Source: Rebecca billardiae RCC1528 (taxonomy: Eukaryota > Protista > Haptophyta). Taken from it: 64,000 nt of DNA. Positions 1,950-36,397 of the stretch are shown here, piece by piece. Below the pieces are notes generated by a model. The model had not been told where the DNA came from. It was given only the letters and a program-made list of their open reading frames with translations, and made no database searches. Position 1 is the first letter of the stretch, and each line of letters starts with the position of its first letter. A program made the position numbers and the translations under genes. The stretch is taken from contig OZ251234.1 of assembly GCA_965240325.2 (NCBI GenBank), forward strand, positions 1,054,001-1,118,000. The letters run 5' to 3'.

Positions 1950-3234
1950 TGACCGCGTTCCGCGGTCCTTTTCTGCATAGAATCAACGCAGTTGGGGGCC
2001 CGCGGTGGCCGTGCAATCGCGGCTCTCCGCCGTAGTGGCAGTTCGCCAGTTGAAGTCGGTTCTGAGATGACTGAAGCTATATTAGTCCGACCGTCGCCCT
2101 GCCTGCGCGACCGCGAGACTCATTCACACTTCACACAATCACAGCAGCGGACCTGAGACCGCACCCGGCACCGGTCGTCAAATCGGACGTCCGTCTGACA
2201 ACTAGCTGCCAAATGTCCAACTGGCTGATCAGCTCGGATCCGACCCGTCCGCGATCGTGCCATCGGCATCGGAATTACTACTAGTAGCTGCCAAACTGTG
2301 TCCAACTCTGGCTGATCAGCTCGGATCCGACCCGTCCGCGATCGTGCCGAGTGAGTCGTGCCGCGGAGCTCGGAGTACTGAAGGAGTCGGGTGTGACAGC
2401 AGGGTGCTTTAGCGCTGCGGCCCGTGCCAGCCAACGACCAGACGTACTCTGGCCACTTGACCCGTTGCACGGGTGAGTGACCGTACGCCCTGCCTAGTGC
2501 CTACCGCGCGCGCCGCGCGACCGGCGACTCGGGGTGATGGAGAGCGGATGGCGACAGCAGCAGCAGTCCTCATGAAGACGATGAAACTGGCGGCACGGGT
2601 GCACGAGGTGGCAGGCGAAAGCGCGCCGACGAGACCGCATTTGACACACCTGAGCCGCACGCGCGTGCCGTTACGCCGAGCGGCGAGCGCTGCAAACGCG
2701 CAACCGTACCGCGCGCGCCACGACGGCGCGGCACTAGCTGATGCAGGCCGTACTGCCGGCACTGCTTCTGCGATCATGCGCCACGGTCGCAGCTGACTGC
2801 GTGAGCAGCAAGCGGGAGGCGGGTCCGGAGGCACGTGCAGGCCGCCGTCCCGCATATCCGCCATCGCCCATCGTGCCGGGGCACGTCACCTCCGACGATC
2901 CGGATGTGGCCCAGTCCGGACGTCACGCGATCCGGGAAGACGAGTACGATTCGCTCGTAACGAACCGTTACACTAATGTCACGTCCAGCTGACGTCCAGA
3001 TCTCACTTTACTTAAGGGAATCAGCTGGGCGCGGTTTTTTTTGGCCTGATAGACCTCTCAATGCGATCTCAAAAACTCGAAACTCGGTCTCCGCCAGCCC
3101 TAAAAATCGCCCCCCGTCCCTTTTTTTCCGCCGCCCCCCGTCCCTTTTTTCTTGATCAAAGATCTTTTTGAAACGTGGTTCGGGCCCGCTGGTGCGGGCT
3201 CCACGCTGCGCGCTCCGCCCTGCACCGCGGGCCA
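1950..3234 (-). mobile_element. Non-autonomous Helentron/Helitron2-like element, copy E1 (1285 bp)
   Basis: Near-identical inverted copy at 34036-36397; 5' end TGGCCCGCGGTGCA at 3234; subterminal inverted copy near 1997-2007; terminal GACCGCG-GAA-CGCGGTC hairpin at 1951-1967; A/T flanks; internal 41-bp direct repeat (2221, 2308). Confidence 0.75.
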
Positions 3235-3333
3235 TCATGATGATGATTCCTAATTCTAGCTGATGCGCCGCGCGGGCGTGCACAGTGACCTGACAGGGCG
3301 GATCGGCGCTCGCCTGATGAGCACAATGGCTGC

Positions 3334-4500
3334 TCATGGGGCACTACCGTCTGCGTCTGCGCCCGGGCCGCGCAGGCGGCGTCGCATCTCGTCCGCCGGG
3401 ACAGCCGCGACGGCCCTGAGCGCGCGCCAGCCCGGGGTCAGCGTGAGCGTGAGGTACGCGTTCTCGGGCTGCAGCGCGGCCGAGTAGGAGCCAAACACGA
3501 GCGAGGCCGCGATGCGCGCGCCCACCAGTGCGGGGAGCGCGGTCCACTCGGCTTCGGAGAGGGGCAGCGCCGCGTCGTACGCGCGGCTGAGCGCAGCGCA
3601 GCACTCCCACGCGCGCTCGGCCACGCCCGTCCCCACGTGCTGCTCGTAGTTGCACGAGATCAGCGTGTACGCCAGCGCAATCCCGAGCTCGCACGCGCGC
3701 CACGTGTGCGCCATGTCGCCAAAGTCAATCACGCCCAGCGCGCGCGCCGCGCCCTCGGCCGCGGGCGAGACGAGGATGTTCTGGTCGTTGAGGTCGCCGT
3801 GGATCAGCTGGCGGGGAAGCTCGGCGTCGAGCGGCGCGGCGAGCTCCGCGAAGCGCGCGAGCGCGCCCTCGACGAGCGCGCGCTCGTCCGCGCCGTCCGC
3901 GAGCGCGGAGAGAAACGGCGCGACGCTCGACTGGACGGTGCGCACGTCCCACGCATGCGGGCGCGCGGCGCACGCGGCGCACGCGGCACCGTCGAGGTCG
4001 GCGAGGGCGCGCGTGACGCCCGCGAGCATCCGGCCCACCTCCGCCATCAGCTCGGGCTCGGGCGCCACGTCGGCCAGCAGGCGCGCCGGCTTGAACGGCA
4101 GCAGCCGGACGGCGTGTGAGCGCGGCGGGGCACGCGCGGCGTTGGGCAGCGTGTCCACGAGCTCGATGGCGCGGCCGTTGCGCGAGGCGATGGAGACAGG
4201 CGCCCAGCACCCCGCGTGCGCGTGCACCCGCGCCATCGCCGTGTCCTGCGCCTGTATCAGCGGCAGGTTGTTCGTCTCAACGCCGTTGTGCAGCTTGAGC
4301 ACAAACTCAGCCCCGCGCCCGTCGCGCAGGAAAAAGTTGTTGTCGTCGTACGAGTCGAGCTGCTTGACGGAGGCGGGGTCGCACTCGAGGCCGTACAGCT
4401 CGCGCGCCAGGCGCACCGCATCGTCGCAGCTCGCCGCGGGCTTCTCCAGCTTCCGCTTCGCCTCGTCCGCCGTCGCCTTGTCCGCTGCAGATGGCGCCAT
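3334..4500 (-). CDS. Hydroxylysine kinase / aminoglycoside phosphotransferase (APH) family kinase
   Basis: 388 aa; L.SYDDNNF, FVLK, IHGDLNDQNIL (Brenner motif), VIDFGD. Confidence 0.9.
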   Translation of the reverse strand: MAPSAADKATADEAKRKLEKPAASCDDAVRLARELYGLECDPASVKQLDSYDDNNFFLRDGRGAEFVLKLHNGVETNNLPLIQAQDTAMARVHAHAGCWAPVSIASRNGRAIELVDTLPNAARAPPRSHAVRLLPFKPARLLADVAPEPELMAEVGRMLAGVTRALADLDGAACAACAARPHAWDVRTVQSSVAPFLSALADGADERALVEGALARFAELAAPLDAELPRQLIHGDLNDQNILVSPAAEGAARALGVIDFGDMAHTWRACELGIALAYTLISCNYEQHVGTGVAERAWECCAALSRAYDAALPLSEAEWTALPALVGARIAASLVFGSYSAALQPENAYLTLTLTPGWRALRAVAAVPADEMRRRLRGPGADADGSAP

Positions 4501-5820
4501 CGTGCCAAATAATCACGACGCGACGATCAACGATTCAACGGGCGCGGGTCGATCTTCTATTCTAGTATTCTTCTCAGCCGTGGTCGAAGGCGGTGGCGAT
4601 TGGCGTGCGGACGCGCATCTGCCTTCCACCCACCGACGATGCTTGCGGAGAAGCTCGGGCTGAAGAGCAGCTCGGGGCTCGCCATGATTCACAGCCCACG
4701 CGACGACAGGTTACTCCGTCGCGACGTGATCTCGCTGCTCACCTTCTTCTGCGCGGGCCTGACGGTGCTGTACTGCGCGGTGTCTGCGCTGCCGCCCATG
4801 GACGCCTCCGACCGCACGCACCTGCACAGGCCACGAGACATCGAGGAGTTCCACGCCATACAGGCGCGCGCATCCGCTCGCCGCCCCCCGCGGGCCCGAC
4901 TCCACCACCTCTCCCCGTGCTCAGCCCGCGCGCGCGCGCCCCGGCCACATTGTGTGCGCGCTTGCACATGTGCGCAGACGGTGCTGCTCAAGTACCGCGA
5001 CAACCCAGAGGAGGGGCAGCCACCAGCGCCGCGGTGACCCAGCAGCCACGCCGGCCGCCGAGCCGCGGATGCAGCCAGCGAGCGCGCGCAGAGAGGCGCA
5101 TCGCTTGCCAAGCTACTGCGCGGATCCGCGCCCACCCCCTGTCCGGGCCTGGCTCGGCTTGACGACCGGAAAACCTTCGGGCAGCCGGACCCGGGCTGCC
5201 AGCCCGCCCTCATGAGGGCTACCGGTGAGTTATACCCGCATAACCGAGCGGTTATACAACCTTCTCCAGCTTCCGCTTCGCCTCGTCCGCCGTCGCCTTG
5301 TCCGCTGCAGATGGCGCCATCGTGCCAAATAATCACGACGCGACGATCAACGATTCAACGGGCGCGGGTCGATCTTCTATTCTAGTATTCTTCTCAGCCG
5401 TGGTCGAAGGCGGTGGCGATTGGCGTGCGGACGCGCATCTGCCTTCCACCCACCGACGATGCTTGCGGAGAAGCTCGGGCTGAAGAGCAGCTCGGGGCTC
5501 GCCATGATTCACAGCCCACGCGACGACAGGTTACTCCGTCGCGACGTGATCTCGCTGCTCACCTTCTTCTGCGCGGGCCTGACGGTGCTGTACTGCGCGG
5601 TGTCTGCGCTGCCGCCCATGGACGCCTCCGACCGCACGCACCTGCACAGGCCACGAGACATCGAGGAGTTCCACGCCATACAGGCGCGCGCATCCGCTCG
5701 CCGCCCCCCGCGGGCCCGACTCCACCACCTCTCCCCGTGCTCAGCCCGCGCGCGCGCGCCCCGGCCACATTGTGTGCGCGCTTGCACATGTGCGCAGACG
5801 GTGCTGCTCAAGTACCGCGA
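4441..5820. repeat. 560-bp direct duplication (4441-5000 and 5261-5820) flanking a unique 260-bp insert (5001-5260)
   Basis: Both copies run CTTCTCCAGC...AGTACCGCGA and appear identical by eye; duplicated ORF starts are seen in the ORF track. Confidence 0.92.
4639..5037 (+). pseudogene. Truncated duplicate of the 5' part of the TMEM41/VTT gene
   Basis: Same exon 1 and intron 1 as 5459-5820; reads into the insert and stops at 5037. Confidence 0.75.
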
Positions 5821-6556
5821 GCTCAACTCCGGCGCGGTGCTGGCGGTGTTCATGTGCGCGTACATATTCATGCAGGCGTTCGCCATCCCGGGCTCGGTCA
5901 TCTTCTCCCTACTCTCCGGCCCGCTGTTCGGCCCGCTCTCCGGCTACGTTCTCGTGTGCATCTCGACGACGGTGGGCGCGATCGCGTGCTACTGCGTGTC
6001 CAACTGCTTCATGCGCAGGCTGCTGGCGGCGCGGTTCCCCGCGCGCGTGGCCTTCCTCGAGCAGAAGGTGAAGGAGAACGCGGACAACGTCTTCTACTTC
6101 ATGCTCTCGCTGCGCATGTCGCCGCTCCTGCCCAACTGGTTTGTGAACGCGGCCTCGCCGGTTGCGGGCGTCTCGCTCAGAGAATTCTCGCTCGCCACGC
6201 TCGTCGGGCTGATGCCGATCAACTTCCTGCACGTGCAGGCCGGTGCGCGCGCGGCGGCGCACGCACGGCGGCGTCCGAGTGCTCGCCGCGCGTGCGCTCA
6301 CGCGGCTCCGCCCGCCGCCCGCCGTGCCTGTGCGCGCGCAGGCCTGACGATTGGGTACGCGCACTCGCTCTCGTCCGCGCTGCAAAATTACCGGCGCGTG
6401 CTGCTGCTGCTCAGCCTGTCGCTGCTCGCGCTCGTGCCCGTCTACATCAAGGCGCGGCGCAGGCGAAAGGGGTCGGGCGCGGGCTTGTTGGGCGGGCACC
6501 ACTACCACAAGGCCAAGACGGACGAGGACGAGCTGGAGGGCAACCACCCGGCATGA
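5459..6556 (+). CDS. TMEM41/VTT (SNARE-associated Golgi, DedA family) membrane protein; introns 5684-5797 (GC-AG) and 6243-6341
   Basis: YIFMQAFAIPGS..FSLLSG.LFG, LRMSPLLPNWFVN.ASP motifs; splice sites restore a hydrophobic profile. Confidence 0.88.
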   Translation: MLAEKLGLKSSSGLAMIHSPRDDRLLRRDVISLLTFFCAGLTVLYCAVSALPPMDASDRTHLHRPRDIEEFHAIQARASARRPPRARLHHLSPCSARARAPRPHCVRACTCAQTVLLKYRELNSGAVLAVFMCAYIFMQAFAIPGSVIFSLLSGPLFGPLSGYVLVCISTTVGAIACYCVSNCFMRRLLAARFPARVAFLEQKVKENADNVFYFMLSLRMSPLLPNWFVNAASPVAGVSLREFSLATLVGLMPINFLHVQAGARAAAHARRRPSARRACAHAAPPAARRACARAGLTIGYAHSLSSALQNYRRVLLLLSLSLLALVPVYIKARRRRKGSGAGLLGGHHYHKAKTDEDELEGNHPA

Positions 6557-6926
6557 CGTTGACCGTCAAGGGTCGCCGGAGCGCGCGGCCCGCCGGCGGC
6601 CCCGTGTCCCCGGTGGCCACACTGTCTGAGGCATGACCCACGATCCGTCCCGGCCGCTGCCGCATCCTGCACGTCCATTGTGGCCCACTGGCCCAACCTG
6701 GAGGCTGCCTCGAGAGCAGCCTGCTGGCAGCTAGCCGCCCTTGTCGCCGTTCCGGTTGGGCTCGGCTGGATGTTTCGCACTTCGCAGCATTCAGAGTCCG
6801 GATGTTCACCATCCGGACTATCACGGCCACAGTGAAAAAAAGCTTGACCCGCCGGCCACACCCCTAAAATACGTGGACCTCGTCGGACGAGCGAACTCGA
6901 CGGTCATCAGGGCCAGCCGCGCGACC

Positions 6927-14061: not shown

Positions 14062-14064
<3 letters not shown>

Positions 14065-14123
<59 letters not shown>

Positions 14124-14124
14124 G

Positions 14125-14179
<55 letters not shown>
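14065..14179. repeat. Interrupted (TA)n microsatellite
   Basis: Direct read. Confidence 0.95.
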
Positions 14180-14180
<1 letters not shown>

Positions 14181-14300: not shown

Positions 14301-15910
14301 TGACCGCGTTCCGCGGTCCTTTTCCGTAGAACGAACGTAGTTCAGGGCCCGCGGTGGCGGTGCACCCTCCGTCGCAGTCGTCTATTGACAGACCAGTTGC
14401 ATATGCCCGTACAACTAGACTCCAGCGGCGCGCCGCCGCCCGCCGCGCCGGGCGGGCCCATTGCAGCCGCCGGCGCGGCGCCGATTGTGTACAGGCGGAT
14501 GCGACGAGGCGTGATCGACGCATGAGCGCGACGTACTCCACGTGCACACCAGGCCACGCGGAGCTGACAGCCAGGGAGCACGGTGCGGGGCCGCGGATTC
14601 GTTCGGGCCGCTGCTGCTGACCGCTGTCCCCGCCGGGTCACCCCCCGCGCCGCGGCAGCGCCCGGGATGATGCACTGGTCCGAGTAGGGTTCGACCAGCG
14701 CCTGCGCGACGGCCGACAGGCGGGCGCGAGGCGTGATCGACGCATGAGCGCAACTCTACGTGCACGCCAGGCCACGCGGAGCTGACAGCCCGAGGGAGCA
14801 CGGTGCCGAGGTGCGAGGGCACCGGTGATCCGGTTCGCGCACTCGCCGCGCGTGCACGGGCAGCTGACACACCTCGATCAGGCTCGGCACGCGTTGCAGA
14901 GGCACGGCCAGCTCTGGGGACGTCACGCACCACCGTCGCCCGCGCAGCTCGTCCTCCTCGTAGAGTACCGTTCAGTTCCGAGGCGTAGCCCTCGCTCAGA
15001 GTCGACCGACGATGGACTCCGGGATCGTCGGCGCGCCTGCTCTCTCTCAATCAAGAAGAGTTCTGGGAGACCCCGGAAAGGCATGGCAAGGGCGGCGCGT
15101 GGTGAAGTCGAAGGCTCAGAGATCGATCAGTCCGGCATCAGGCGCCGCTGCCCCCGAGCTTGCGAGAGCCCGAACACAGGGCGGCGGCTGCGGCGCCGGC
15201 TCGCGGACGCGCCGGGGCCGCGCAAGGCCGCGCCGAGGCATCGACAGGGCGGCAGGGGCGGCGGGGGCGCGCGGAGTGAGCGGGGGCACGACGAACGCGA
15301 TGTCGACGGCAGTCGGGACCCGCCGCAGCCGCGCGCTCCAGGCGCCATTCGCCGCGCGCACCTGCCCATCGCCGTCCTCACCCGTCGGTCGCTCGCAGCG
15401 TGAGCCTCGTGCCCGTGGCTCGCCTCCAAACGCGGGCCGCCTCTGGTGGGCCGCCGCCCGGGGCCACGCGCGCGCCCAACCAAGTCCGTTCGCGTCAGAT
15501 AGTATTGAGATATACGCCGAGCTTGGGCCCTCTGCTACTGGCCCTTGCCTTGTCGGCTCCTGATACAGATAGGGCGCGATTGAATAGTTGATCAACTGAT
15601 TCAAGGGACGTACATTGTCACATCGGTTCGCGGCAATCTCACTATCAAACTAAATCGCTCGTAACGAACCGTTACGTTAAAGTCACGGCCGCTCACGTCC
15701 CGTCCATCGATTGAATAGGGGAATGTCGTGGACGCGGTTATTTCTCCGTAATGCATGTGTAGAGAGGGTCTCAAAAATCGAAACTCGGTCACCGCCAGCC
15801 CTAAAAATCGCCCCCCGTCCCTTTTTTCTTGATCAAAGATCTTTTTGAAACGTGGTTAGGGCCCACGGAGCGGGCTCCACGCTGCGCGTTCCGCCCTGCA
15901 CCGCGGGCCA
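14301..15910 (-). mobile_element. Helentron/Helitron2-like element, copy E2 (1610 bp), different interior
   Basis: Same ~140-bp 5' block as E1 (15770-15910) and same 3' ATIR plus hairpin block (14301-14356); internal ~80-bp direct repeat (14506, 14728). Confidence 0.72.
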
Positions 15911-16179: not shown

Positions 16180-18633
16180 TCAGGCGGCTGTGTCACATCC
16201 TGCCGGCTTTTCGATGCCCTCGTACAGCGGCACGGGCACGAAACCTAGCTCGAGTCCGGGCGGCGGCTTCACGAGCTGCGCGCCGTCTATCTCAGCGAGC
16301 TCCTCGCCCTCCGCGCCACCCGGCTCGATCCAGCGCTCGCCCGCCGCGCACAGCCGGTGCAGCGCCTCCGCGCGCGCCTGCATGAACTCGCGCTGCTCCG
16401 CGGAGAGGCGCAGCCGCTGCAGCGCGGGCTGGTCCACGAAGCGGTACCAGCGGTATGCGATCCACGAGGGCGAGGTCGTGCGCACGCAGTGCAGCTCGGG
16501 GCGCGCCGGGCCGGGCGCGTCGAGGCAGCCACCCTCGGGCGCGGTGCGCAGCGCATCGTATGGACCCCAAGGCGGCTTCTCTGGGAAGGCCGCGTCGCGC
16601 AGCGCCGCGCCCGCCGCCGACTCGGGAGCGGGCGCGCGCTCGGGCCCCGCGAAGAAGCGCGGTGGTTCCTCCTGCCCGGCGGCGGCGCTGCTCGGCGGGT
16701 GATGCGCCCACACGCACTCGCCCTCCTCCACGGTGGTGCGCAGCGTGCCCACGCTCCCCGGCTGCACGGCGATCTCGCCCTCCAGCTTGTACGCCGCCGC
16801 GTGCGTTGCCTCGTAGCACTGAGTGCGCGTGCTGCTGCCCGCGGCAAAGGGCGCGCGGCCGAGCACGCCCCGCTCGAGCGCGGCACGGATGGCGCCGTGC
16901 ACGCTGTCCTTCGCGTAGCCGCGCTGCCCGCGCACAAGCACGGTGCGCCCGCTCTGCCGCGGAAGGCGCAGCCTTGGGATTCGGTACATGCCACCGGCGC
17001 CCTTGAGCGTGCTGATCGTATTCCATTCAAACGCGGCGCCTCCCCAGTTGAAGCCGACGCCAGCCGAGCCAAAGTCGGCGAGGTGCGCGCTCTCGGCGGC
17101 GTAGCCGTCGGGCCGGCGCGCCCAGAACTCGGGCAGCACGTAGGCCAGCGGGCCGCCAAAGTTGCCCGCGTCCAGGACGATCGTGACGAAGTTGCGCCCG
17201 TCCTCGGCGGACGTCTGGCCGAGCGGTGTCCGCGCGTAGCCCACGCCCAGCAGGCCCTCCCGTGAGAACGTGACGCCGTCCGGCGCGAGGAGCAGCCGGT
17301 TGCTCAGCTGCACGATCGCGTGCTCGCTGCACGGCTTGGGCGACGGGACGCCGAAGGCGAAGAGGCTCGGGTCCATCTCCGAGTAGCAGCCGGCGGTCAT
17401 ACCGTGGCGCCACTTGGGCCGCGTGGTGGGCAGCTGGCTCATCCAGTACCCAGGCCCGCCCTCGACTGTCTCGTACAGGTCCCTGCATTTATACGCGGAG
17501 TCGCAGCAGCCGAAGCGGCCGTCGCCCACGGTGGTGCTCGGCCAGCCCGCGGGGTCGCACGCGCACGTCTCGCCGAACTCGACGTTCGTCGGCGTGAGCC
17601 ACGTGCTGCCCATCCCCATCTGCATGCGCAGCGGCACGCCCTCGTCCCACAGTGCGAAAATTCGAGTGTACCACGAAAAGCCCTCGGTGCTCGCGCTCGC
17701 GCGCTCCGCAGCGCCCCAGTAGAAGGAGTGGGCGTACACAAGGCTCGGCGGCGCGGGCGGCACGGGCGGCGCGGGCGGCGCGGACGGCGGCACGGGCGAG
17801 CCACGCCCGGAGCACGGGCACAGCCGCGAGTAGTCGACGGCACGCGCGCCGCACGAGCCTTGAGGATCGGACTCGCCGAATGCGCACACGCCGACGCACT
17901 CGCCGCCACAGCAGCCGGCCGACGTGCACACGGCGGGCGTGAAGGGGTAGCCCCAGCCCACGGTGCGCGTGCAGCTCGTACCGGCCTCGCTCGCCGCGGC
18001 GAGCACCGCCGCGGCGCTGTGCGCGCCCACGAGCGCAGTCTCGTCGCACCAGCCGCCAAACTGGTCGCACGTGTCCGAGCAGGAGGCACCAGGCTTGCCG
18101 AGGTGCCAGGCAGGCGCAAGCGGTGGTGGCGGTGGTGGCTGGACGGTAGTGAGCGGCGGCGGCGGCGCTGGGGACTTGCCAAGCCTGTAGCATGGGCACA
18201 GCCGCGAGTAGTCGACGTCGCGCGCGCCGCACGAGCCTTGAGGATCGGACTCGCCGAATGCGCACACGCCGACGCACTCGCCGCCACAGCAGCCGGCCGA
18301 CGTGCACACGCCGGGCGTGAAGGGGTAGCCCCAGCCCACGGTGCGCGTGCAGCTCGTACCGGCCTCGCTCGCCGCGGCGAGCACCGCCGCGGCGCTGTGC
18401 GCGCCCACGAGCGCAGTCTCGTCGCACCAGCCGCCAAACTGGTCGCACGTGTCCGAGCAGGAGGCACCAGGCTCGCCGAGGTGCCAGGCGGTCGTCGGCT
18501 CGGCGTTCGCAGTGAGCGCGGCGGGTATGGAAGAGCGCGCCAGGCTCAGCGCGCAAATGGCCACGGCGCACGCGATGGCGAGGCACGCGGCTGCCGCCCT
18601 CGTGATCACCGCGCCGGACGACCCGCTCATCAC
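16180..18633 (-). CDS. Secreted/membrane-anchored protein with two tandem Cys-rich modules and an uncharacterised C-terminal domain
   Basis: 817 aa; N-terminal hydrophobic anchor; two near-identical WHLG.PGASCSDTC...SRLCPC units at 378-bp period, separated by Pro-rich linkers. Confidence 0.85.
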   Translation of the reverse strand: MMSGSSGAVITRAAAACLAIACAVAICALSLARSSIPAALTANAEPTTAWHLGEPGASCSDTCDQFGGWCDETALVGAHSAAAVLAAASEAGTSCTRTVGWGYPFTPGVCTSAGCCGGECVGVCAFGESDPQGSCGARDVDYSRLCPCYRLGKSPAPPPPLTTVQPPPPPPLAPAWHLGKPGASCSDTCDQFGGWCDETALVGAHSAAAVLAAASEAGTSCTRTVGWGYPFTPAVCTSAGCCGGECVGVCAFGESDPQGSCGARAVDYSRLCPCSGRGSPVPPSAPPAPPVPPAPPSLVYAHSFYWGAAERASASTEGFSWYTRIFALWDEGVPLRMQMGMGSTWLTPTNVEFGETCACDPAGWPSTTVGDGRFGCCDSAYKCRDLYETVEGGPGYWMSQLPTTRPKWRHGMTAGCYSEMDPSLFAFGVPSPKPCSEHAIVQLSNRLLLAPDGVTFSREGLLGVGYARTPLGQTSAEDGRNFVTIVLDAGNFGGPLAYVLPEFWARRPDGYAAESAHLADFGSAGVGFNWGGAAFEWNTISTLKGAGGMYRIPRLRLPRQSGRTVLVRGQRGYAKDSVHGAIRAALERGVLGRAPFAAGSSTRTQCYEATHAAAYKLEGEIAVQPGSVGTLRTTVEEGECVWAHHPPSSAAAGQEEPPRFFAGPERAPAPESAAGAALRDAAFPEKPPWGPYDALRTAPEGGCLDAPGPARPELHCVRTTSPSWIAYRWYRFVDQPALQRLRLSAEQREFMQARAEALHRLCAAGERWIEPGGAEGEELAEIDGAQLVKPPPGLELGFVPVPLYEGIEKPAGCDTAA

Positions 18634-19051: not shown

Positions 19052-19110
19052 TGACCGCGTTCCGCGGTCCTCTTCCGTCAGAATCAACGTAGTTGGGGGC
19101 CCGCGGTGCA
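19052..19110 (-). mobile_element. Orphan 3' end (hairpin plus ATIR) of the same element family
   Basis: TGACCGCGTTCCGCGGTCC...AGTTGGGGGCCCGCGGTGCA matches the E1/E2 ends; no matching 5' end found. Confidence 0.7.
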
Positions 19111-19932
19111 GCTGTGCCACCCGCTCCGTCACGGCACGCTGTAGCCTCGCCGCCGCGTCGATGCAGATTGCAGTGCGTTACGTGCGAGGGCCGCTGCGCG
19201 CTTCGGCGCCGCCGGCGGTGAGTGACAGTCGGCCGACCGGGGGCCGCGAAGCACGAGGGCGACTGCGAGCACGGGCGAGAGGGGAGCAAGGCGTCGTAGC
19301 ATATGCCACCTCGCCATCGTCGTGGACTCGCCGCTCGCAGATCAGCCTGTGGCTCTCGTGTCAGGCAGTCGTCGTGAGCGCCAGCCATTCGCTCACTCTT
19401 TTGTTGGAGTTGGACGTGGGGCGAGGAAGTCAGGAAGATGGGCGCTGATGGGGCGCCGCGAGGCGGCCGCTAACTCGCAGGCGGACCGGGCTGCATGAAG
19501 TATGAAGTATGAATATCTTATAACATTTAATTCCGAAATAAGGCGCCACTGAGTTTCGGCGACGGCTTCGTCTATGTAATGGCCCGCGGTGCAGGGCGGA
19601 GCGCGTAGCGTGGAGCCCCGCCGGGGGCCCTCACTACGTTGTCAAAAAGATCTTTTGATCAAAGAAAAGGGGACGGGGGACGATTTTTAGGGCTGTTGGA
19701 GGGTGAGTTTTCGCTTTTTCGAGGGGTACGTTGGCCCATAGTGCTCTGCATTAGCAACTACGCGCTTGACGAAATAAGCGCGCCCACGCCATTCCGCATA
19801 AGTCGATGGACGGACGTGGGATCAGATACCCCGGGGGTGAAACAAGTGAGTATTTTTGTCCTTCTTGTATGCTGGAGTACGAGTTTGCCGAGCGACGTTT
19901 GATTGTTTTGGGTCGAAACCAGCTATGAGGCC

Positions 19933-20152
19933 AGATTCTTTTGAATAGCGCTTGCGAAAATAAGTTACCCGTCTGTCTCGATGGATGAACCGCCTCATGG
20001 TATTGAAAGAGATTCTTTTAAATAAGGCTTTTAAACCAAGTTACCCACCTGTCTCGTTGGATGAACCTCCTCATCATATTGAAGAGATTCTTTTGAATAG
20101 CGCTATTTAAAGCCAGTTACCCGCTTGCCTCGATGGATGAACCTCCCGTCAT
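19933..20152. repeat. ~76-bp degenerate tandem repeat x3 inside E3
   Basis: AGATTCTTTT.AATA...AGTTACCC...TG.CTCG.TGGATGAACC recurs three times. Confidence 0.85.
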
Positions 20153-23100
20153 CCCGTGCCTGTAATGAAGAGAGAGGCGCTTGTGAGTTGCCGGAAAACA
20201 GGTTACCCGCCCGCCAGCGTTGCGGGAGGCCCGAGGGCGCTGGGCGGGCGAGGAAGTGCCGTGCAAAGGCGCGCACCGAGTGCGCCACGGGTGCCGGCCG
20301 GCCGCTGGTCTCGCCCTATCGCCTTCCGCCCTCCCCGAGCGCGCCTGCAGGTACCTCCGGACGCGCATTCGGCTTGCTCACTCGATCAGCTCACTCACAG
20401 CTGCCGGTCACGCAGCCGCGCGGCGGCCCCGCGCGACCTGAGGTCACCGCGGCCCAAAGTGTGCGTGCGCGCCGCGCCGGTGCCCTCGCGCCGGTGGCGT
20501 GGGCTGGCTGGCTGCTGGTCTCGCCCACGCGCCCCACTCACCCCAAGCGCGCAACGCCTGCGGGAAGCGCCGGCACCATACCGCTAGCTGACTACTGCCT
20601 GCACGTCGACGCCGTCGGCGCCGCGCCTCGATCGATCGTCGACTCGCAGACCGCGTTGCGACTCCGTCCGCGCCCGCGCGCAGGGTGGGAGATGCTGATG
20701 CAGGAGCAGATGCAGGACTCGGACGCCGAGCTGGAGTCGAGCGCCACGTTCCGCACCCACTGCTACGCATACGGCGCTCCTGCGCGAAGACTGGCCGTAC
20801 GGTGCTCGTGGTGCCGTCTGTCCGAGTCTTTGCGCGAACTACTTCGTTCGTCGGCTTGCTTGGAGATGATCTGATGAGAGATGCAAGGCGATCAATAGGC
20901 GGAATGAGCCCCGGGGTCGCGCGAGCTCGCCCACCTCGCCCGGCGCGCACGCCGACGCCGCCACCGCGGCTCGGCGGCCGGACTAATCTCGGCCCGCGGC
21001 GCGTGCCCGTCCCCCCGGCCGGGCGCACGCCGCCGCCGGGCGCCGCCGCCGCGCAGGCAGTGCACTCGGTGGACGAGGAGACGGCCCTGCTGCGCGCGGA
21101 GCGCTGCGCGCCGCGCGCTGCTCCTGCTGCGGTGCGCAGCAGTCCGCTCGTCCGCCCCGCGGGCTCGCCACGGAGCCGACGAGGCCGGACTAATCTCGGC
21201 CCGCCGGGCGCGTGCGTCGGGCAGCGTCGGCCCCCGGGCCGGCGGTGCGCGCCGCCGCCGCCGCCGCGCAGGCCGTGCACTCAGTGGATGAGGAGACGGC
21301 CCCGTGCGCAGACGAGGAGGTGCCCATCAGCGGCACACTTTACGCGCTGCGGCGGCGGCTGCGCGCATCATCGAGTTAGATTAGTTACCGTAGGCGCGGT
21401 GGCAGCAGCTCCGACTGCTCAGGCCCTCAGCTCAGGCGAACGCTAGGGGGTCCAAGCCAGCAGCCCACCGATTGGTGATATTTGACAACCATGCCATGTA
21501 GGCGTCTGATGAGCGTGACGCTTGCGGAGTCACCCTCAAATATGTCCCAGAGCCCAGCCCAGCCGCCAGAAGCACTAAAAACCGACTCCGCGTGTCGTCG
21601 CGCGGCCGCGCGCGCACGCAGCGGCGCCCGCTGTGTCACATAGAGATTCAGCCGAATGTTACCTACTTGTCATGGCAGCTAGATGACGATACGCGGTCGG
21701 ACTTACTTATTGACAAGCGCTGCCCTCTATCCAGAGGATTTTATGGTGAAAATACCGAAAAAGTGGGGCACAATGCTGTGCGCGTAGACGTCCATGAAAA
21801 ACGACTCCAAGATCGAGCACATTACCCATTTAATTATGGGAATGTACCCGCATATAAGCACCATGTTACCCACTATATATCGAATGCGGTTAATTTTGCC
21901 ATATGTATTCAAGTGAGTGTCTATACATGGGTACCTTGCTCACTACTTGCTGGGTCATCCGAATACGGAGTACGGCGGCGCCGAGACGGCTCATGCCACT
22001 GGACTCAGCACATCAGTGAGTGCCGGCCCGCGAACGCGGGCCTGATGCCGGTGGCGGGCTGCACGTGCTGCGGCACACGGCCAACTCCGCCACTAAACAT
22101 GCCGCCACCATCCCGGCGTGAGAGTCCTCTCCGCCGTCGAGGCTGGCGTGCGCAGACTAGCTCGCCATGTGCCGGGCGGCTTCCTTACCCGTACTCAGGT
22201 GTCACCGGCACCGTCGCCGTTCGTCGTACCCCAGCCCACGCGAGGCCGCCGCCGGTCCACCTCTGCTGCGGCTACAGCGCTTGCAGTCGAGGCTGCTCCA
22301 GCTTACCTCTGACTCTGCGAGCTGCTCGGTGGCGAGCGTTGAGCTCTCTGCCTCCACTGCCGCGCCCAGCAGCACTCCTGCCCCGAGCATCATGCAGTCC
22401 GCGCGCTGCTCCAAGACGGCCGCCAACAGTGGCGCAGGCACTCCCGAGACGAAGACACGGTGTGCAGATGTGGCAGCGGTCATAGCGGAGCTTGGCGGCG
22501 CGCGTTTGCTCCGCAGCAAGCTTGACGTTCGTGACAAGGTGCACGCTCTTCGCCTCAGCGCAGCTCGGCTGCTGCATGCAGCCAAGCGGCACGCCAAGTG
22601 GCACAACAAACAAGCCGACACGTGCCGGCTGGAGCTTCTGGCGATACTACTGTGAGCTGGAAGACAGGCCCCGCGCGTACACAGGGTCGCCGAGCTTGCT
22701 TACCACCCACGACTGCCGCGCACTCCCGTTTGCGAACGAGCGGCCAGCGATCGCGCGAGTGCATGCGCAGCGCGTGGGGAGGTGAGCACTGCACGCACCA
22801 GGCCGAGCGCCGGGGGGTCATTCATGCTCATCATGGACAAGCTAAACCAGGTGTAAACCAGCGCGCAGCGTGCACGCTTCACCTGAAACCGGGGCTGCGT
22901 TGTCCGCGCTCATCCGGATGAGAGTTCGAACGGCGCGCAGAGCGGGGCTGTGAAGTTCAAGATGTCCGGTGAGAGCGAGCTGCCAGCGATCATTTGGTCG
23001 ACCGCTGTCATGGTGGCCACCCTGACTCGCCCGCCCGCGCGCCTCTGACGCCAGAGCGCGCTCCGCCGCGCCGACGCGACGATGAAGTCCACCGCCCAGG

Positions 23101-23977
23101 CGTGCTACTCGCCCGATCTCGGGCTCGACCGTGCTCTGAACGGCCGCGGCCCGTGCTGCCGCAATTCGAGGCAACAATGTTCGGAAATGGTCACCGCGAA
23201 ATCGGTCAGTCGATTTTCGATTTTTAATTCCGCGGCTTGGACCCCCTACGAACGCTGAAGCTTGGCGATGACTCGCGAACTCAGTCATCAGGAAGTCAGT
23301 AGCTACATGTCCTAAGACAGACTCGCCGCCTGAGCCATATTGAAAGCGGTTAAATAAACAGTTCTGCTAACGATCCTTCGATCAAGCTCAATAGCAATCT
23401 CATCATCTATAGAATCTTTATACTGACCAAGGGGGTTCAATCAGAACTGCGCGCCCTTCAATCGAATATCATGAACGGTACGGAAACTGACTTTGTGCCT
23501 CAGATCACAAATGTGCCCGTCCTAATCGTACGACGTGCGTTAAGTTTTGTCGCAACATGGGGGTATGGGGGTAATCAGGGACGATTTGTTGTTGTTCGGT
23601 CTTTCACACCCGCGCCTTTTACCCCCTAATACTGAAAGATACTGACTTTGCGCACGCGCTCCTCCTAATCGTTCGTGCGTTAAGTTTCGTCGCGCAATCA
23701 TGGCCCGTTGCTGCTTGGTCTTTCACACCCTCGCCTTTTACCCCCTATGGGGGTAATACTGAAAGATACTATAATAGTTAATGATGAGGCCGGCCAGGTT
23801 CGTTCGCGAACGACCACTTATGAACGACGATATAATAAACTTCTCAAGCTCAATAGCAATATATCTCTATAAAAACATCTGACCCGCGCGCCCTCCAATC
23901 AAAAGCAGCATATACTTTACGACGATTGATGATCGTCGTCGGCAGCAAAAGTCCGTTGGCCCTTGAGCCGGGACGCC

Positions 23978-24667
23978 ATGCTCGAACAGAGTGCCGAACA
24001 GATGGGCAACGTCGACGAGTTCCCCGTGACGGCAGAAGAGGCCGCGCTCCTCGTGGCAGCGATAGAGGAGTACGAGCGGGTCGACGAGTTCCGTGACCCT
24101 GTACTCGACGCAGCCATGCTTGCAATCCCTGACGACCAGGTGGAGTGGCCGTGCGCTCTTCACCAATGCGCTCGCTCTCCCGACGGCCGGTCGACATCGG
24201 CAACGCCGGTGCAGCACGAGTCTGCCGAGTCCACGCCGCCCGACCAGCAAATCCCTGCTGCCAAGAGCTTCTCGCGCAGCTCGCGGCGCGGTCTCACGCT
24301 CGGCGTCGACACGAGCCGTGAGGAGTCGAGCGTTTCAAGGCCGGTCGACGAGCAGGCGATCATCCGGCAGCTCGACGCAAACGAGTCGCGCGCGCAGCAG
24401 CCTGCTCAGCCACCCCTGCCCACCATCGTCTGGCCGCAGCAGCAGCTCGCTCTGCCGGGTGGCGGCAACGGGATGTTTGGCATCTGTCTGTTCCCACAGC
24501 CGCCCGCCGGTTTACCAGACCGTTCTTCGTGCGGCGGTGTCTTGAGGCGACACCTCGCAACCTCGGGCTGGAGGACTAGCCAGCCAGTGTGGGCGTGCGC
24601 CCCCGGGCGGCATCGGCCGCCGAGTTGCAGGCAAGCCGACGTGCCGCTGCGAGCCGGAGCCTCATGA
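23978..24667 (+). CDS. Hypothetical ORF carried inside E3
   Basis: ~229 aa from MLEQSAEQ; acidic helical N-terminus; preceded by an AT-rich promoter-like region. Confidence 0.4.
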   Translation: MLEQSAEQMGNVDEFPVTAEEAALLVAAIEEYERVDEFRDPVLDAAMLAIPDDQVEWPCALHQCARSPDGRSTSATPVQHESAESTPPDQQIPAAKSFSRSSRRGLTLGVDTSREESSVSRPVDEQAIIRQLDANESRAQQPAQPPLPTIVWPQQQLALPGGGNGMFGICLFPQPPAGLPDRSSCGGVLRRHLATSGWRTSQPVWACAPGRHRPPSCRQADVPLRAGAS

Positions 24668-24876
24668 CGTTCATGCGGTCGGCGGACTCGGGCTATCGGC
24701 GACAGACCCGCTCACGGCCCGCCGGCCCGGCCCCGGTCGGCGGCAACCCGCGCGGCAACTGAGTTGGCAGCTCAGGCGAACTGTTACACATGCCAGACTG
24801 AGACAGCAGCCGACGGAGGGTGCACCGCGGGCCTCTAACTACGTTGGTTCTACGGAAGGACCGCGGAACGCGGTCA

Positions 24877-24932
24877 TATATATATGCAATATGTATATAT
24901 ATGTATATATATATGTATATATGTATGTGTGA

Positions 24933-25028
<96 letters not shown>

Positions 25029-25059
25029 TGTGTCTAGATCTAGATCTAGATCTAGAGAC

Positions 25060-25113
<54 letters not shown>

Positions 25114-25149
25114 AGAGAGAGAGACGGAGAGAGAGAGAGAGAGAGAGAG

Positions 25150-25191
<42 letters not shown>
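24877..25191. repeat. Compound (TA)/(TG)/(TCTAGA)/(AG) microsatellite block
   Basis: Direct read. Confidence 0.95.
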
Positions 25192-25194
<3 letters not shown>

Positions 25195-27477: not shown

Positions 27478-27524
27478 CCCAGCAAAAACCGACGGCTTAG
27501 TGAATGCCGTCGGTTTTTGCTGGG
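27478..27524. other. Perfect 19-bp stem / 9-nt loop hairpin
   Basis: CCCAGCAAAAACCGACGGC-TTAGTGAAT-GCCGTCGGTTTTTGCTGGG. Confidence 0.9.
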
Positions 27525-30128: not shown

Positions 30129-30216
30129 GTACGCAGACACGGCACACGCTGAGCCCGCGGCTCCGACTCTTCCCGTGTGACAATGTGCCTCGTTCATCTT
30201 GAACATGCCCCCCCTG

Positions 30217-30556: not shown

Positions 30557-31200
30557 ACGAAGCCGTACTGTCACTACTGAATGACTAGATTCTTAGTCTA
30601 GATACTGGCATTGCGACTCGCCGATCAGCCGTCATCAGTGCCACAGTGGTCAGACGGACGTCGGTCAAAGCCTATAGTACGTCGTCGCATTGTGTGCCAG
30701 ACAGTGCGGGTCTGGCGCAATCCCGGCATCGGTACGGATGTAATAGAGTCGATGTGATATATTCGGCGCGGACCATGTCTTAGATGCGGCGACGCTACAT
30801 GTCGTAGACGTAGTAACTGATATATATCAACGAGTTTATAGCAGAGAGTTAACGATCTACGACGGGCGGCTGGGCGCTGGCGCCTGGGCCCCGCGACGGA
30901 GGGTGGGCACAGAGGCCCCCGGACGGTTCAGGTTCGGTAGTTAGTGCGTGACGCAGTACTCGTCGATAATGCTGCTCTCTCTCTCTCGTCTCTCTCTCTC
31001 TCACACAGTCCGTCATCTCTACTCTCTCTCTATGAATAAATATAGTATTTAAATATATTCATATATATATAATTTATATTAGTTATTCGTCGTGAATTCA
31101 AAGTGAGTTCTGCTGATTATAATAAAAGCTCGTCATCGCCAGCGGCTGGCAGCGGGCTGCCGGCCAGGCTGCTCATCGACATCGGCGGAGTCGTCATCAA

Positions 31201-33469
31201 TCAGTGGCCTTCGTGCTGATGCAGAGCGCTAAGCATGCTCTGCAGCGATGCCATGCCCTCCTGTGTCATCGCCGGCGTCTTGGCGCTCGCGGCCATCTCC
31301 GCCACCTTGAGACTCCGCTTGAGAGCATCGAGCTTGGCCGGCACGATGTCGACGCTTCGCTCGAGCGCGGCGTGGCGCGTGCCATCGAGTGCGCCCGCCC
31401 CGTCAGCGGCGGCGCCATCACGCGCGGCCGAGGCGCCGCCGCGCACGCCGCCGCCGTTCGCACGGCCGACGTCGCGCGCGTCGGCCGGCCGCACATACTT
31501 GCGCCGGCGGCCAGCCTCGTACGCGGCGGTGGTCTGCATGTGGTGCGTCGGCCCGTCGTAGTCGTGCTCGACCAGCGGGTGCTGCAGCGCGTACTTGAGC
31601 GCGTTGATCGCCGTGCGCACGTCGATGCCGGAGTCGATCAGCGCCTCTGCCTCATCCGAGAGCAGCAGAGTGTCCTGCAGCTCGCGCAGGTTGAGCGCAG
31701 ACTGCGAGGGCGCGCCGAGCGCGCTGCTATCCGCGCCGTCCGCCGTGCCCGCGCGCGACGCGCCGCCGCTGCCCCTCCGCTCACTCCCCTCGCCGCCGCC
31801 CGCGCGCACGGCCCCGCTCTGCGTGAGGAAGAAGCCGCCAGATCCGATCTCGGCGCCCGCGCCCTCCGCTTCGCGCTCTGCGAGCAGTCTCGCCTTCACC
31901 TGCGCGACGTGAAGGTTCTCCTTGCTGCGCGCGCGGCAGGGGTGGGGGCAGCGCTCCGGCGTGAGCGCGGCGTCGCGCCGCCCCGCGCGCGCGCAAGCAG
32001 CCCCACCTACCCCCCCGCGCGCGCACCTCTGCGCCGGCTGCGTCGGCTGCGCCCTGGCGCCCGTCCTCATCGCAATCTCCGCGGCGCGGTGGCTCTTGAC
32101 AACGGCGTCAAGACTGAGCACGGACTCCGGGTTGAAGCCGCGCGTGGTGCGCGGCGGCTCGGGCTCGGTGAGCACCAGCTCGACGCCGCGGTCCGAGAGC
32201 ACGTCGACGAACGCCTGCGGCACCTCCCTGCCCCGCCCTCCCCTCAGGAACGGGTTCCCCCACACGCTCAGCGCCGTGAGCTGCCCCATCTGCAGCACCG
32301 CGACTAACTCATCCTCGTGCTCGATCGAGTTGCACGCGAGATCGATCGCCTGGACCTCGGCGTAGCCGCCGTTCTGCACGGCGGCGTTGGCGATGCGCGC
32401 GAGCTTGTTCGACTGCACACTCAGCTCTGCGCCGCGCGCGGCGCGCGGCACGGCGCGTGGCGGCGAGAACTGAGCGGTCAGTCCGTGTCGGACGCAAGGG
32501 CAGCGGGGCGCGCGGTGGCCGTGAGCACGCACGCGCGCGCGCGCACCTCGCAAGTAGGGGACGGTGCCGATCGCGACGAGCGCGTCGTCGTCGGCGAGCA
32601 GGTTCCGGTCGAGCGTCAGCTTGCGCAGCTCGACGAACGCGGACCAGTCCGGCGGCAGCTGCCTCAGCTGGTTGCACGTGAGGTCGAGCTCGCGCAGCGC
32701 CGGCAGCGCGCCCAGTGCGCCGACCGCGTCCGCGTTCAGCCCGTTGTACCCGAGGTTGAGCACCTCGAGGCGTGGGAAGGCGCCGGCGGGGAGGGCGAGC
32801 GCGGTGATCCCGTTGCAGTCGATGTGCAGCTCCTGCAGCGCCGGCAGCGCCGCCAGCTGCTCGAGCTTGAGCCGGTTGTCGCCCACGTCTAGATGAGAGA
32901 GCCGAGAGAAGAAGCCAAGGTCGTCCTCGATCACTCGGACGATGCCCGAGCCCTCGAGCACGGCCTGCGTGGCGTCCTCGGGGTCGTCGACGTGGCACGC
33001 GTCGAGCAGCAGGAAACCGTCGAGAGACACCTCCTCCGGCTCGCGCGGCCCCGAGGGCGGCGGGATGCGCTTCGGTAGCGCGTTCACCGCGATCCACTCG
33101 CGCTGGTTACGCGGCGGCCGCTGCGGTGGTGGCTCCAGCGGTATCTCGCCGGCGCCGACCGGGAGCGGCTCGGGCGCTGGCCGCGCGCCCGCCTGCGAGA
33201 CGGCCTTCATGATGCCCCTGGCGAAGGGCGTGTACGAGCCCGCTGCGCGGCAGCGCGCGCCGAGCCGCGCGGCATCCCACGCGGGCACGCAGAGCGTCAG
33301 CGCGGCGCACGGGGCGCGGCTGCGGCGCAGCAACACGCCCGCCGGCGCAGCAGCGCGCACGTGGCAGTTTGAACTTCTCAGGATCCTCCTCATCGGGCTC
33401 GAGAGGCCTGCCATCGTCGATGTTCACGCGCGAGGTCTCCTCGAAACCGGGAGGCGGCTCGAACGCCAT
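31201..33469 (-). CDS. XRRA1: XRRA1-like leucine-rich-repeat protein; introns 33243-33360, 32427-32546, 31925-32026
   Basis: LDGFLLL..C, LRR units (L..LDVGDNRL, L.VLNLGYN.L, LRELDLTCNQL), GFFLTQ motif. Confidence 0.75.
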
Positions 33470-34035
33470 CGTGATGCCCAAATATGATGGGCCCGATGGC
33501 CTGTTCCACGCTGGTAACGGCGATGGCGTCGCTCATCGATTTTATTTATTTTGTCTCAGCAATAATCACATCGTGCAGCTCTGACACTGTGAACCGTGAC
33601 ACTGACGACGACGCCTGCCCGCTGTACATCAGACGATCAGTGCATGCCACCAAAGCAGCAAACGGGTGATTAAACGGGAGCACGGCCACCAGCAAATAGC
33701 AATATGACTCAGTAGCTAAGAGTAAGCCACTGACCTCCACTCTCCAGCCAGTGACTGGGCCGCCCTGAGTGCAAGTGGCAGTGGGCGTAACGTCGGACCG
33801 CATACAGTATTACGCCTAATACGTGTACCCTGGTGTAGTAACGTGGCTCTTCGTCTTACTCTGAACTCTATGAGTCCGTATTCGCAGACCGATTGTCTTC
33901 GTAGTTCGTACTAATCGTCGTAGGAAAATATTATTAATAATATAACAGTACAACATGCTGCCCCATCAGCTGACAACGAGCGAGCGTCCGCGCGTGGCTG
34001 CTCGGCCTCGGTGTTACTATTCGTATTCAAAATTA

Positions 34036-36397
34036 TGGCCCGCGGTGCAGGGCGGAGCGCGCAGCGTGGAGCCCGCACCAGCGGGCCCGAACCACGTTTC
34101 AAAAAGATCTTTGATCAAGAAAAAAGGGACGGGGGGCGGCGGAAAAAAAGGGACGGGGGGCGATTTTTAGGGCTGGCGGAGACCGAGTTTCGAGTTTTTG
34201 AGATCGCATTGAGAGGTCTATCAGGCCAAAAAAAACCGCGCCCAGCTGATTCCCTTAAGTAAAGTGCGATCTGGACGTCAGCTGGACGTGACATTAGTGT
34301 AACGGTTCGTTACGAGCGAATCGTACTCGTCTTCCCGGATCGCGTGACGTCCGGACTGGGCCACATCCGGATCGTCGGAGGTGACGTGCCCCGGCACGAT
34401 GGGCGATGGCGGATATGCGGGACGGCGCCTGCACGTGCCTCCGGACCCGCCTCCCGCTTGCTGCTCACGCAGTCAGCTGCGACCGTGGCGCATGATCGCA
34501 GAAGCAGTGCCGGCAGTACGGCCTGCATCAGCTAGTGCCGCGCCGTCGTGGCGCGCGCGGTACGGTTGCGCGTTTGTTTGCAGCGCTCGCCGCTCTGACG
34601 GCGACGGCACGCGCGTGCGGCTCAGGTGTGTCAAATGCGGTCTCGTCGGCGCGCTTTCGCCTGCCACCTCGTGCACCCGTGCCGCCAGTTTCATCGGGAC
34701 GGCGCCTGCACGTGCCTCCGGACCCGCCTCCCGCTTGCTGCTCACGCAGTCAGCTGCGACCGTGGCGCATGATCGCAGACTAGCAGTGCCGGCAGTACGG
34801 CCTGCATCAGCTAGTGCCGCGCCGTCGTGGCGCGCGCGGTACGGTTGCGCGTTTGCAGCGCTCGCCGCTCGGCGACGGCACGCGCGTGCGGCTCAGGTGT
34901 GTCAAATGCGGTCTCGTCGGCGCGCTTTCGCCTGCCACCTCGTGCACCCGTGCCGCCAGTTTCATCGTCTTCATGAGGACTGCTGCTGCTGTCGCCATCC
35001 GCTCTCCATCACCCCGAGTCGCCGGTCGCGCGGCGCGCGCGGTAGGCACTAGGCAGGGCGTACGGTCACTCACCCGTGCAACGGGTCAAGTGGCCAGAGT
35101 ACGTCTGGTCGTTGGCTGGCACGGGCCGCAGCGCTAAAGCACCCTGCTGTCACACCCGACTCGGCCTTCAGTACTCCGAGCTCCGCGGCACGACTCACTC
35201 GGCACGATCGCGGACGGGTCGGATCCGAGCTGATCAGCCAGAGTTGGACACAGTTTGGCAGCTACTACAGTCCCCTCAACAATTGGTTACCCTTGTGTTT
35301 GGCTGTCTATACCAGCTCAGTCACTGTTTGAGGCCCACTGCTGCATGCTATCTGTTACTGCACCTATAGCCCTCACAGACCAGGTGGGTATGAGCTGGGC
35401 GGGTGTGTGGGCTGAGTCAGTCAGATAAATTGAATGCAGGTGCACAGCCGGCTGACGGGTGCTGCGCGGGGGTGCTGGACCACCACGAGGGCAGGCAGGG
35501 ATGGAAATTCACCCCCTGAGCAGGCTGTGGGCTGGCTGGCTGGGAGTGTAGCAGCTGTATAGTGGGCCCTGGCGCTGCAGCTGGATGGCCTTTGATACTG
35601 CCTAGCAGCCAGCCTAGCAGCACAGCCTGGCGTGAGCAGTGCGGTTTCAGTGCGCAGGCCACGTCTCTGCGGGTGGTGGTCGGGGAATGGCCACCACAGT
35701 GCACCAGATGCACCTAGCCTGCCAGCGGCCCACCTGCTGATTTAGGGTATGCCCTGTAGCACAGCACACGAGGCTCCGCCGAAAATCAGCGGCGCGCTGT
35801 GCTACAAGCTGGGCTGAAAGGGGTGTGGGAGCCAGTCGAGAGCCTGTCGGCCACTGTCACGTCCGAGCTGGCCGGCTTCACGTGCTGCCCAGAGGAGTCC
35901 TCCAATTGTCACTCACCCGGCTGAAGTCATGATGGGCGGGTGCAGCTCGACCGAATGGAGAGTGCTGGGGCCGCAGGTGCCCGTCATGCAAGCCTAGGCG
36001 GCCAGGAGAAGGTGTGATGTGCAGGTGTGCTCTCCATAGGGTAATTTATTGTTGAGAGGACTGTAGTAGTAATTCCGATGCCGATGGCACGATCGCGGAC
36101 GGGTCGGATCCGAGCTGATCAGCCAGTTGGACATTTGGCAGCTAGTTGTCAGGCGGACGTCCGATTTGACGACCGGTGCCGGGTGCGGTCTCAGGTCCGC
36201 TGCTGTGATTGTGTGAAGTGTGAATGAGTCTCGCGGTCGCGCAGGCAGGGCGACGGTCGGACTAATATAGCTTCAGTCATCTCAGAACCGACTTCAACTG
36301 GCGAGGTGCCACTACGGCGGAGAGCCGCGATTGCACGGCCACCGCGGGCCCCCAACTGCGTTGATTCTATGCAGAAAAGGACCGCGGAACGCGGTCA
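34036..36397 (+). mobile_element. Helentron/Helitron2-like element, copy E4 (= E1 plus ~278-bp internal tandem duplication plus nested MITE)
   Basis: Reverse complement of E1 throughout; duplication ~34419-34696 / 34697-34966; ATIR at 36340-36350; hairpin at 36380-36396. Confidence 0.78.
35268..36063. mobile_element. Tc1/mariner-type MITE (796 bp), TA target-site duplication
   Basis: 26-bp TIRs CAGTCCCCTCAACAATTGGTTACCCT / CAGTCCTCTCAACAATAAATTACCCT; TA at 35266-35267 and 36064-36065; empty site (single TA, 2282-2283) in E1. Confidence 0.92.

Follow-up and report, generated by a model that had tools for sequence, protein, structure and literature searches.

The stretch of DNA analysed here, called the window below, comprises 64 kb of 66% GC from the haptophyte Rebecca billardiae RCC1528 (assembly GCA_965240325.2, contig OZ251234.1, positions 1,054,001 to 1,118,000). 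It holds ordinary eukaryotic genes, among them those for an APH-family kinase, DAHP synthase, SecA, an LRR protein, a tubulin-tyrosine ligase, a papain-like protease, an acyl-CoA oxidase and a hybrid histidine kinase. The best database matches of the acyl-CoA oxidase ORF are 68% and 61% identical, and those from named organisms 45% or less, which says little about the host taxon. In the intergenic spaces lie four complete elements, E1 to E4, with the same ends, and a stub, Ex, with the same 3' end. To judge from the structure of these ends, the elements are probably non-autonomous members of one Helitron2-type (HLE2) rolling-circle transposon family.

Elements with common ends

Two short sequences delimit the elements. 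The 5' 20-mer TGGCCCGCGGTGCAGGGCGG has exactly four exact matches in the window, where 0.08 would be expected by chance, and these place the 5' ends at 3234 (-), 15910 (-), 19580 (+) and 34036 (+). The 3' 18-mer GACCGCGGAACGCGGTCA has exactly five exact matches, which place the 3' ends at 1950 (-), 14301 (-), 19052 (-), 24876 (+) and 36397 (+). Every 5' end has its 3' partner on the same strand, always in the same orientation, which gives the four complete elements of Table 1. The fifth 3' end, that of Ex, is unpaired, as the exact 5' 20-mer finds no fifth 5' end in the window; 79 nt of Ex align by BLAST to the 3' end of E2. The stub, possibly one-ended or truncated at its 5' side, points tail-outward at a distance of about 510 bp from the E3 5' end (region 19052-19579, minus strand). 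In an all-against-all BLAST, what all copies have in common is confined to a 5' stretch of 100-285 nt and a 3' stretch of 58-79 nt: E2 has 285 nt (76%) and 66 nt, respectively, in common with E1/E4, and E3 has 103-140 nt and 58-74 nt in common with the other copies. An earlier note on this DNA had listed four complete units, and its coordinates and motifs are exact for E1-E4, including the conserved 5' blocks that it quoted, AAAAAGATCTTT(T)GATCAA and CGATTTTTAGGGCTG, which exact search and alignment find in the copies; however, it overlooked the fifth 3' end, the stub at 19052.

Table 1. Coordinates of the elements, their parts and nearby simple repeats, in positions of the 64-kb window.
Feature	Position	Strand	Basis or remark
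E1, complete element, 1285 bp	1950-3234	-	exact 5' and 3' ends; short form of E4
E2, complete element, 1610 bp, own interior	14301-15910	-	exact ends
Ex, lone 3' end (inverted-repeat copy and terminal hairpin), without 5' end	19052-19130	-	exact 3' 18-mer and repeat copy
E3, complete element, 5297 bp, longest interior	19580-24876	+	exact ends
E4, complete element, 2362 bp	34036-36397	+	exact ends
E4 5' hairpin, GGCCCGCGGTGC pairing with downstream GCACCAGCGGGCC	34037-34087	+	DNA fold; same structure in E1, E2 and E3
Conserved box, two overlapping palindromes AAAGATCTTT and TTGATCAA	34100-34118	+	palindromy read from the sequence
E4 3' inverted-repeat copy CACCGCGGGCC	36340-36350	+	47 nt from the E4 3' end
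Terminal 3' hairpin GACCGCG-GAA-CGCGGTC, then last base A	36380-36397	+	in E4; invariant in five copies
798-bp segment in E4, absent from E1	35266-36063	+	BLAST; between imperfect 59-64-bp direct repeats
Tandem duplication inside E4, period 271-277 bp, two copies	34418-34967	+	
76-bp tandem repeat, 2.8 copies, near the E3 5' end	19933-20146	+	
Long compound dinucleotide microsatellites	989-1079, 1731-1803, 14065-14179, 24877-25191, 48792-48823		

The two ends share an inverted repeat of 11-13 nt that is placed asymmetrically. Its 5' copy, GGCCCGCGGTG(CA), begins at nt 2, directly after the first T of the element, and its complement, (TG)CACCGCGGGCC, is found in all five copies at 43-47 nt from the 3' end, the distance given in the earlier note. 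The 5' copy also takes part in a hairpin of its own, since in DNA folds nt 2-51 form a stem whose first arm (nt 2-13) is GGCCCGCGGTGC and whose partner arm lies downstream. The fold has an energy of -23.5 kcal/mol in E4 (z = -3.3), -20.5 in E2 (z = -2.9) and -17.4 in E3, where z is only -1.2. The 5' arm is invariant whereas the local partner arm varies between copies, so the constraint seems to act on the repeat itself and its 3' copy. At the other end, the terminal hairpin has a 7-bp stem and a GAA loop, stands 1 nt from the end and folds in every copy. The box of two overlapping palindromes is exact in E1, E2 and E4 and has one additional T in E3; by their sequence, the palindromes are plausible protein-binding sites. 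In addition, E2 and E3 contain a direct repeat of about 21 nt (…GGGCC..AAC.ACGTT) between the 3' arm of the 5' hairpin and the region of the 3' repeat, 40-62 nt in from the 5' end and about as far in from the 3' end. Its score lies above all shuffles in these two elements, whereas in E1/E4 the direct-repeat similarity near both ends is not above shuffles.

Junctions, interiors and abundance

All copies read A|TGG...GGTCA|T, with no duplication longer than AT, in agreement with the junctions described in the earlier note. The 5' side is T-N-A|TGG in each of the four full copies, whose flanks end TGA, TGA, TAA and TTA, and the 3' side is GGTCA|T at all five ends. Two further copies, found at loose contig ends in reads, also show ATTA|TGGCCC, bringing the count of T at position -3 to six of the six known 5' flanks; the frequency of TNAT in the GC-rich window is 0.0084. 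On the other side, TATATA opens three of the five 3' flanks (P ~4e-8, or 9e-6 given the leading T). Moreover, the 20-nt pre-insertion sites of E2, E3 and E4 are 80-85% AT, which puts them in the top 1% of the window, so the target is biased towards AT-rich DNA. The two flanks are not mirror images of each other, and this fits oriented insertion. As a separate observation, compound dinucleotide microsatellites of (AT)n, (TG)n and (AG)n are clustered in the same intergenic spaces as the elements; a (TA)n(TG)n(AG)n run directly adjoins E3, and an (AT)57 array is found 120 bp away from E2.

Between the ends, the elements differ. E1 and E4 are 98-99% identical, apart from the 798-bp segment and the tandem duplication of 271-277 bp in E4 (BLAST), and this near-identity indicates recent activity. 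The interiors of E2 and E3 are unrelated to each other and to that of E1/E4, only the ends matching in BLAST, which bears out what the earlier note had said of them. Host genes in the window have a third-position G+C content (GC3) of 0.86-0.92 and a codon-position GC contrast with a median of about 0.2 and values up to 0.45, whereas this contrast averages 0.07-0.13 in the element interiors, without the host-gene pattern. The open reading frames (ORFs) of E2 are Arg/Ala/Gly/Pro-rich noise. Among the ten longest ORFs overlapping E3 (127-297 aa), none has a significant Pfam family, the one sub-threshold match being to Bflower (E 0.007, 17 bits against a cut-off of 25 bits). The ORF at 23963-24667, with a faint coding pattern, has no relative in a word-indexed search and a single, low-complexity match in an exhaustive one, and scans for Rfam families and tRNAs found none in the window. 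Thus, the interiors are more aptly called variable filler, mostly non-coding and with tandem repeats inside. The statement of the earlier note that the elements 'carry variable cargo' went too far, as the interiors have neither a host-like coding signal nor homologues and contain no demonstrable captured genes. One part of the E2 interior (E2 nt 572-647) matches 37416-37487, outside any element, over 76 nt at 83%; the contig depth of that place is raised in run X2 (15-39), and it is probably another dispersed repeat, a piece of which lies inside E2.

Only two sequencing runs hold the family, and their contigs break at the repeat. In run X2, a word depth of about 148 over the 5' end compares with 1.2-7 on unique flanks, and one of 41 over the E1-type joint (35265 joined to 36064) with 8 for the segment found only in E4; word depth in contigs is not copy number, and we read these values only as a multicopy signal. 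The joint of the short form also occurs in run X1, a marine sediment metagenome. The family is therefore clearly multicopy, and the short form is the commoner one. Logan contigs next to E1 and E4 are identical to the window, with the same filled junctions, and stop at the element ends as expected at a repeat: those with the APH gene (ERR14847151, ERR14847148) end 22 nt inside the E1 5' end, and one with the neighbouring LRR gene ends 13 nt inside the E4 5' end. Proteins of this organism are therefore represented in the public protein collection. A look-up with the tubulin-tyrosine ligase protein gave no record. A scan of metagenome contigs with the 5' 19-mer returned 61 loci, all chance matches in GC-rich bacterial DNA, none of them with the downstream block or the 3' end. 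Scans of viral contigs with both ends returned nothing but one chance match (L062), without the inverted repeat. Within the window, a generic structural scan for other families with a hairpin plus a repeat found only the four known copies above noise.

Repeats of other kinds also occur in the window. An 817-aa ORF at 16180-18633 (-), without a Pfam family, holds a 300-bp direct repeat whose copies (17747-18046 and 18125-18424, 378 bp apart) are 90% identical. An exact 300-bp direct repeat with a spacing of 820 bp adjoins the APH-family gene at 4441-5560, and a 123-bp tandem array of about six units, 98-99% identical, lies within a long ORF at 53527-54264.

Assignment, mechanism and rival explanations

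Helitron2 elements are defined by a 5' T, an asymmetric terminal inverted repeat, a 5' hairpin formed from the 5' repeat and a 3' hairpin; the 5' copy of the repeat leaves 0-2 nt to the end, and its 3' copy precedes the 3' hairpin (PMC3627910). The present family has the asymmetric repeat, its own 5' hairpin and the 3' hairpin (PMC3627910, PMC11417382). In HINE elements, 2-4 nt separate the repeat from the 5' end and 38-60 nt from the 3' end, and a 3' palindrome lies 8-35 nt from the end (PMC4067079); with 1 nt and 43-47 nt, the repeat of the present family is placed in the same manner. Canonical Helitrons (HLE1), on the other hand, begin with 5'-TC, end with CTRR-3' and have no terminal inverted repeat, whereas the present ends are TGG... 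and ...GGTCA. On these grounds, we put the probability that the elements are non-autonomous members of one HLE2 family at about 0.75, and mobilisation by an HUH/RepHel transposase would follow the same reasoning from the ends alone.

Several observations weigh against this assignment. HLE2 elements generally insert at T|T (PMC11417382), but all copies here stand at A|T within T-N-A|T. Likewise, the TT target of HINEs and their palindrome at 8-35 nt are replaced by A|T and a hairpin 1 nt from the end. No Rep or helicase occurs among the ten longest ORFs overlapping E3, and no Rep, helicase, DDE transposase, recombinase or reverse transcriptase family in ORFs of at least 250 aa across the window, where the earlier note, too, had seen no Rep/helicase ORF. 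The metagenome- and viral-contig scans with the end sequences revealed no autonomous Rep-helicase partner with these ends. Since A and T stand at both junctions, the element could begin and end one base to either side, and the present copies would also be compatible with a 2-bp AT target duplication instead of none. Paralogous empty sites are lacking within the window, which yields only microsatellite matches, and no empty site or allele was recovered from the contigs of the sequencing runs, including those with the neighbouring genes. The Helitron2/Helentron reading of the earlier note stands as regards the end architecture, which agrees with published HLE2 and HINE structure, but the A|T junction differs from the usual T|T. 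This junction is a quirk of the family. The suggestion of a 'possibly undescribed algal lineage' was too strong; target choice was already known to vary within HLE2, whose accepted members FoHeli1 and FoHeli2 use TNAT|A (PMC5148889). From the structure of their ends, the elements appear to be a new family of a known group and not a new class.

In the scheme that we infer, including its enzyme, its single-strand chemistry and its circle, an element would keep only two end modules, a 5' one of about 100-285 nt and a 3' one of about 60-80 nt, both with a G+C-rich hairpin. A Rep-helicase transposase (HUH, two-tyrosine) encoded elsewhere in the genome would recognise these modules. It would make two nicks in one strand, both at A^T, the first immediately ahead of the 5' hairpin and the second one base past the 3' hairpin. 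The single strand would then be moved, probably via a circle, to another A|T site, preferably T-N-A|T at the edge of a (TA)n run, which it would enter in a fixed orientation and without target duplication. If nothing but the ends is needed, an interior may undergo deletion, duplication or replacement, and such freedom would give rise to copies with the same ends and unrelated, mostly non-coding bodies.

Other enzymes may be considered for the same ends. One version of the HLE2 assignment, unlikely but not negligible in our judgement, holds that the family is a distinct HLE2 sub-lineage with HLE1-like A^T cleavage, one-sided T-N-A|T targets at (TA)n edges, tens of cargo-swapping copies and an unusual transposase, either an Ulp1-protease-fused RepHel or a helicase-less CRESS-like Rep. 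If a non-RepHel enzyme did drive Helitron2-type ends, this would be a new pairing of enzyme and cis elements. A slightly less probable explanation places the family outside Helitrons, with single-strand transposition by a helicase-less or viral-type HUH Rep (Replitron-like with one tyrosine, or CRESS-like) instead of a Helitron RepHel. Replitrons, which have putative members in haptophytes, are recognised by short direct repeats situated at or close to their ends (PMC10288648), and the direct repeat near both ends of E2 and E3 (CCGNGGGCC..AAC.ACGTT) recalls them. However, that repeat is mostly forced by geometry, as both of its copies complement the 5' repeat, and it does not rise above shuffles in E1/E4. 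Moreover, Replitron repeats are terminal and about 6 bp long, with no asymmetric inverted repeat described for these elements; the 3' loop is just GAA, so there is no viral-type nonanucleotide origin loop; and the asymmetric repeat and the two hairpins of HLE2 are present.

Explanations with other chemistry fare worse. AT at both junctions of every copy could mean that a serine or tyrosine site-specific recombinase inserts a circular element by crossover within an AT common to the circle junction (GGTC-AT-GGCC) and the target. This is very unlikely, as an AT core is palindromic and would not fix the orientation, the flanks are asymmetric, the long ORFs of the window contain no recombinase family and the ends have the layout specific to HLE2; rolling-circle transposition would produce tandem arrays just as well (PMC5148889). 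We give hardly any credence to a DDE transposon that moves by cut and paste, has a short and imperfect inverted repeat at its termini (GGCCCGCG / GACC-GCG) and duplicates 2 bp of the target, AT, although the outermost 8 nt would match in inverted orientation at seven of eight positions with one gap (alignments) if the flanking AT were host DNA. The ends are grossly asymmetric: conservation spans 100-285 nt on one side and 60-80 nt on the other, and the long repeat, terminal at the first, lies 43-47 nt inside the element at the second. In addition, the flanking preference is one-sided and the window contains no transposase. No superfamily is known to us that duplicates AT. Two other readings were rejected: a Tc1/mariner-type TA duplication on account of the last three bases of the 5' flanks, and an LTR- or retrovirus-like reading of the TG...CA ends on account of the lack of long terminal repeats and of a reverse transcriptase.

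The HLE2 assignment, if correct, describes a young and abundant family in a lineage for which we found no published report of Helitrons: searches of the literature on Helitrons with haptophytes or Emiliania huxleyi gave no report of Helitrons in a haptophyte genome, and haptophytes are not mentioned in the HELIANO text. It would also add a data point that HLE2 target choice is not restricted to T|T, and it would explain a large repeat class of this genome with the same ends and different bodies. The exact end motifs can be used for masking these repeats and for finding an autonomous copy. No new mechanism is revealed.

Comparison with known systems

Replitrons (PMC10288648) are HUH-type elements of algae and protists, as the family would be. 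They have a short direct repeat near both ends, recalling the one in E2 and E3, a palindrome at the right end, as here, and mostly no duplication, as is probable here. Their hallmark is a terminal direct repeat of about 6 bp, which is only weakly echoed here, and neither an asymmetric inverted repeat nor twin hairpins have been described for them. Canonical Helitrons (HLE1, e.g. Helraiser) likewise have a 3' hairpin and variable interiors, and their insertion between A and T without a duplication is probably a further likeness. However, they have 5'-TC and 3'-CTRR termini without a terminal inverted repeat or 5' hairpin, in contrast to the TGG...GTCA ends and 11-13-nt asymmetric repeat of the present family.

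The likeness is closer within HLE2. The non-autonomous Helentrons known as HINE or DINE-1 (PMC4067079) are also protein-less, occur in high copy number and have a subterminal repeat, a palindrome on the 3' side and tandem repeats or microsatellites in the interior; they leave the target unmodified, as the present family probably does. They differ in their T-rich target (TT) and in the distance of the palindrome from the end (8-35 nt, against 1 nt here), and their partners carry an AP endonuclease. The Helitron2 families of Chlamydomonas reinhardtii (Helitron-1_CRe, Helitron-1N1/1N2_CRe and CRe-1,2,3; Bao & Jurka 2013, PMC3627910) have an asymmetric repeat and their own 5' hairpin, as here, and start with T, as the present elements probably do. 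Their non-autonomous members share about 200 nt on the 5' side and about 50 nt on the 3' side with their partners; they usually make no duplication, and the present family probably makes none either. By description, with which the comparison was made, their 3' repeat lies about 20-30 nt from the end rather than 43-47 nt, and the A|T junction belongs to the present family.

FoHeli1 and FoHeli2 of Fusarium oxysporum (PMC5148889) differ from the family in that their copies are autonomous and 5-6 kb long, that a GAA hairpin stands at their 5' end and that they insert after TNAT (T|A) and not within the motif (TNA|T). Nevertheless, they are alike in the position of the repeat, 38-51 nt from the 3' end, in hairpins with a GAA loop, in a one-sided, AT-rich T-N-A-T target and in their recent activity; they make no duplication, and the family probably makes none either.

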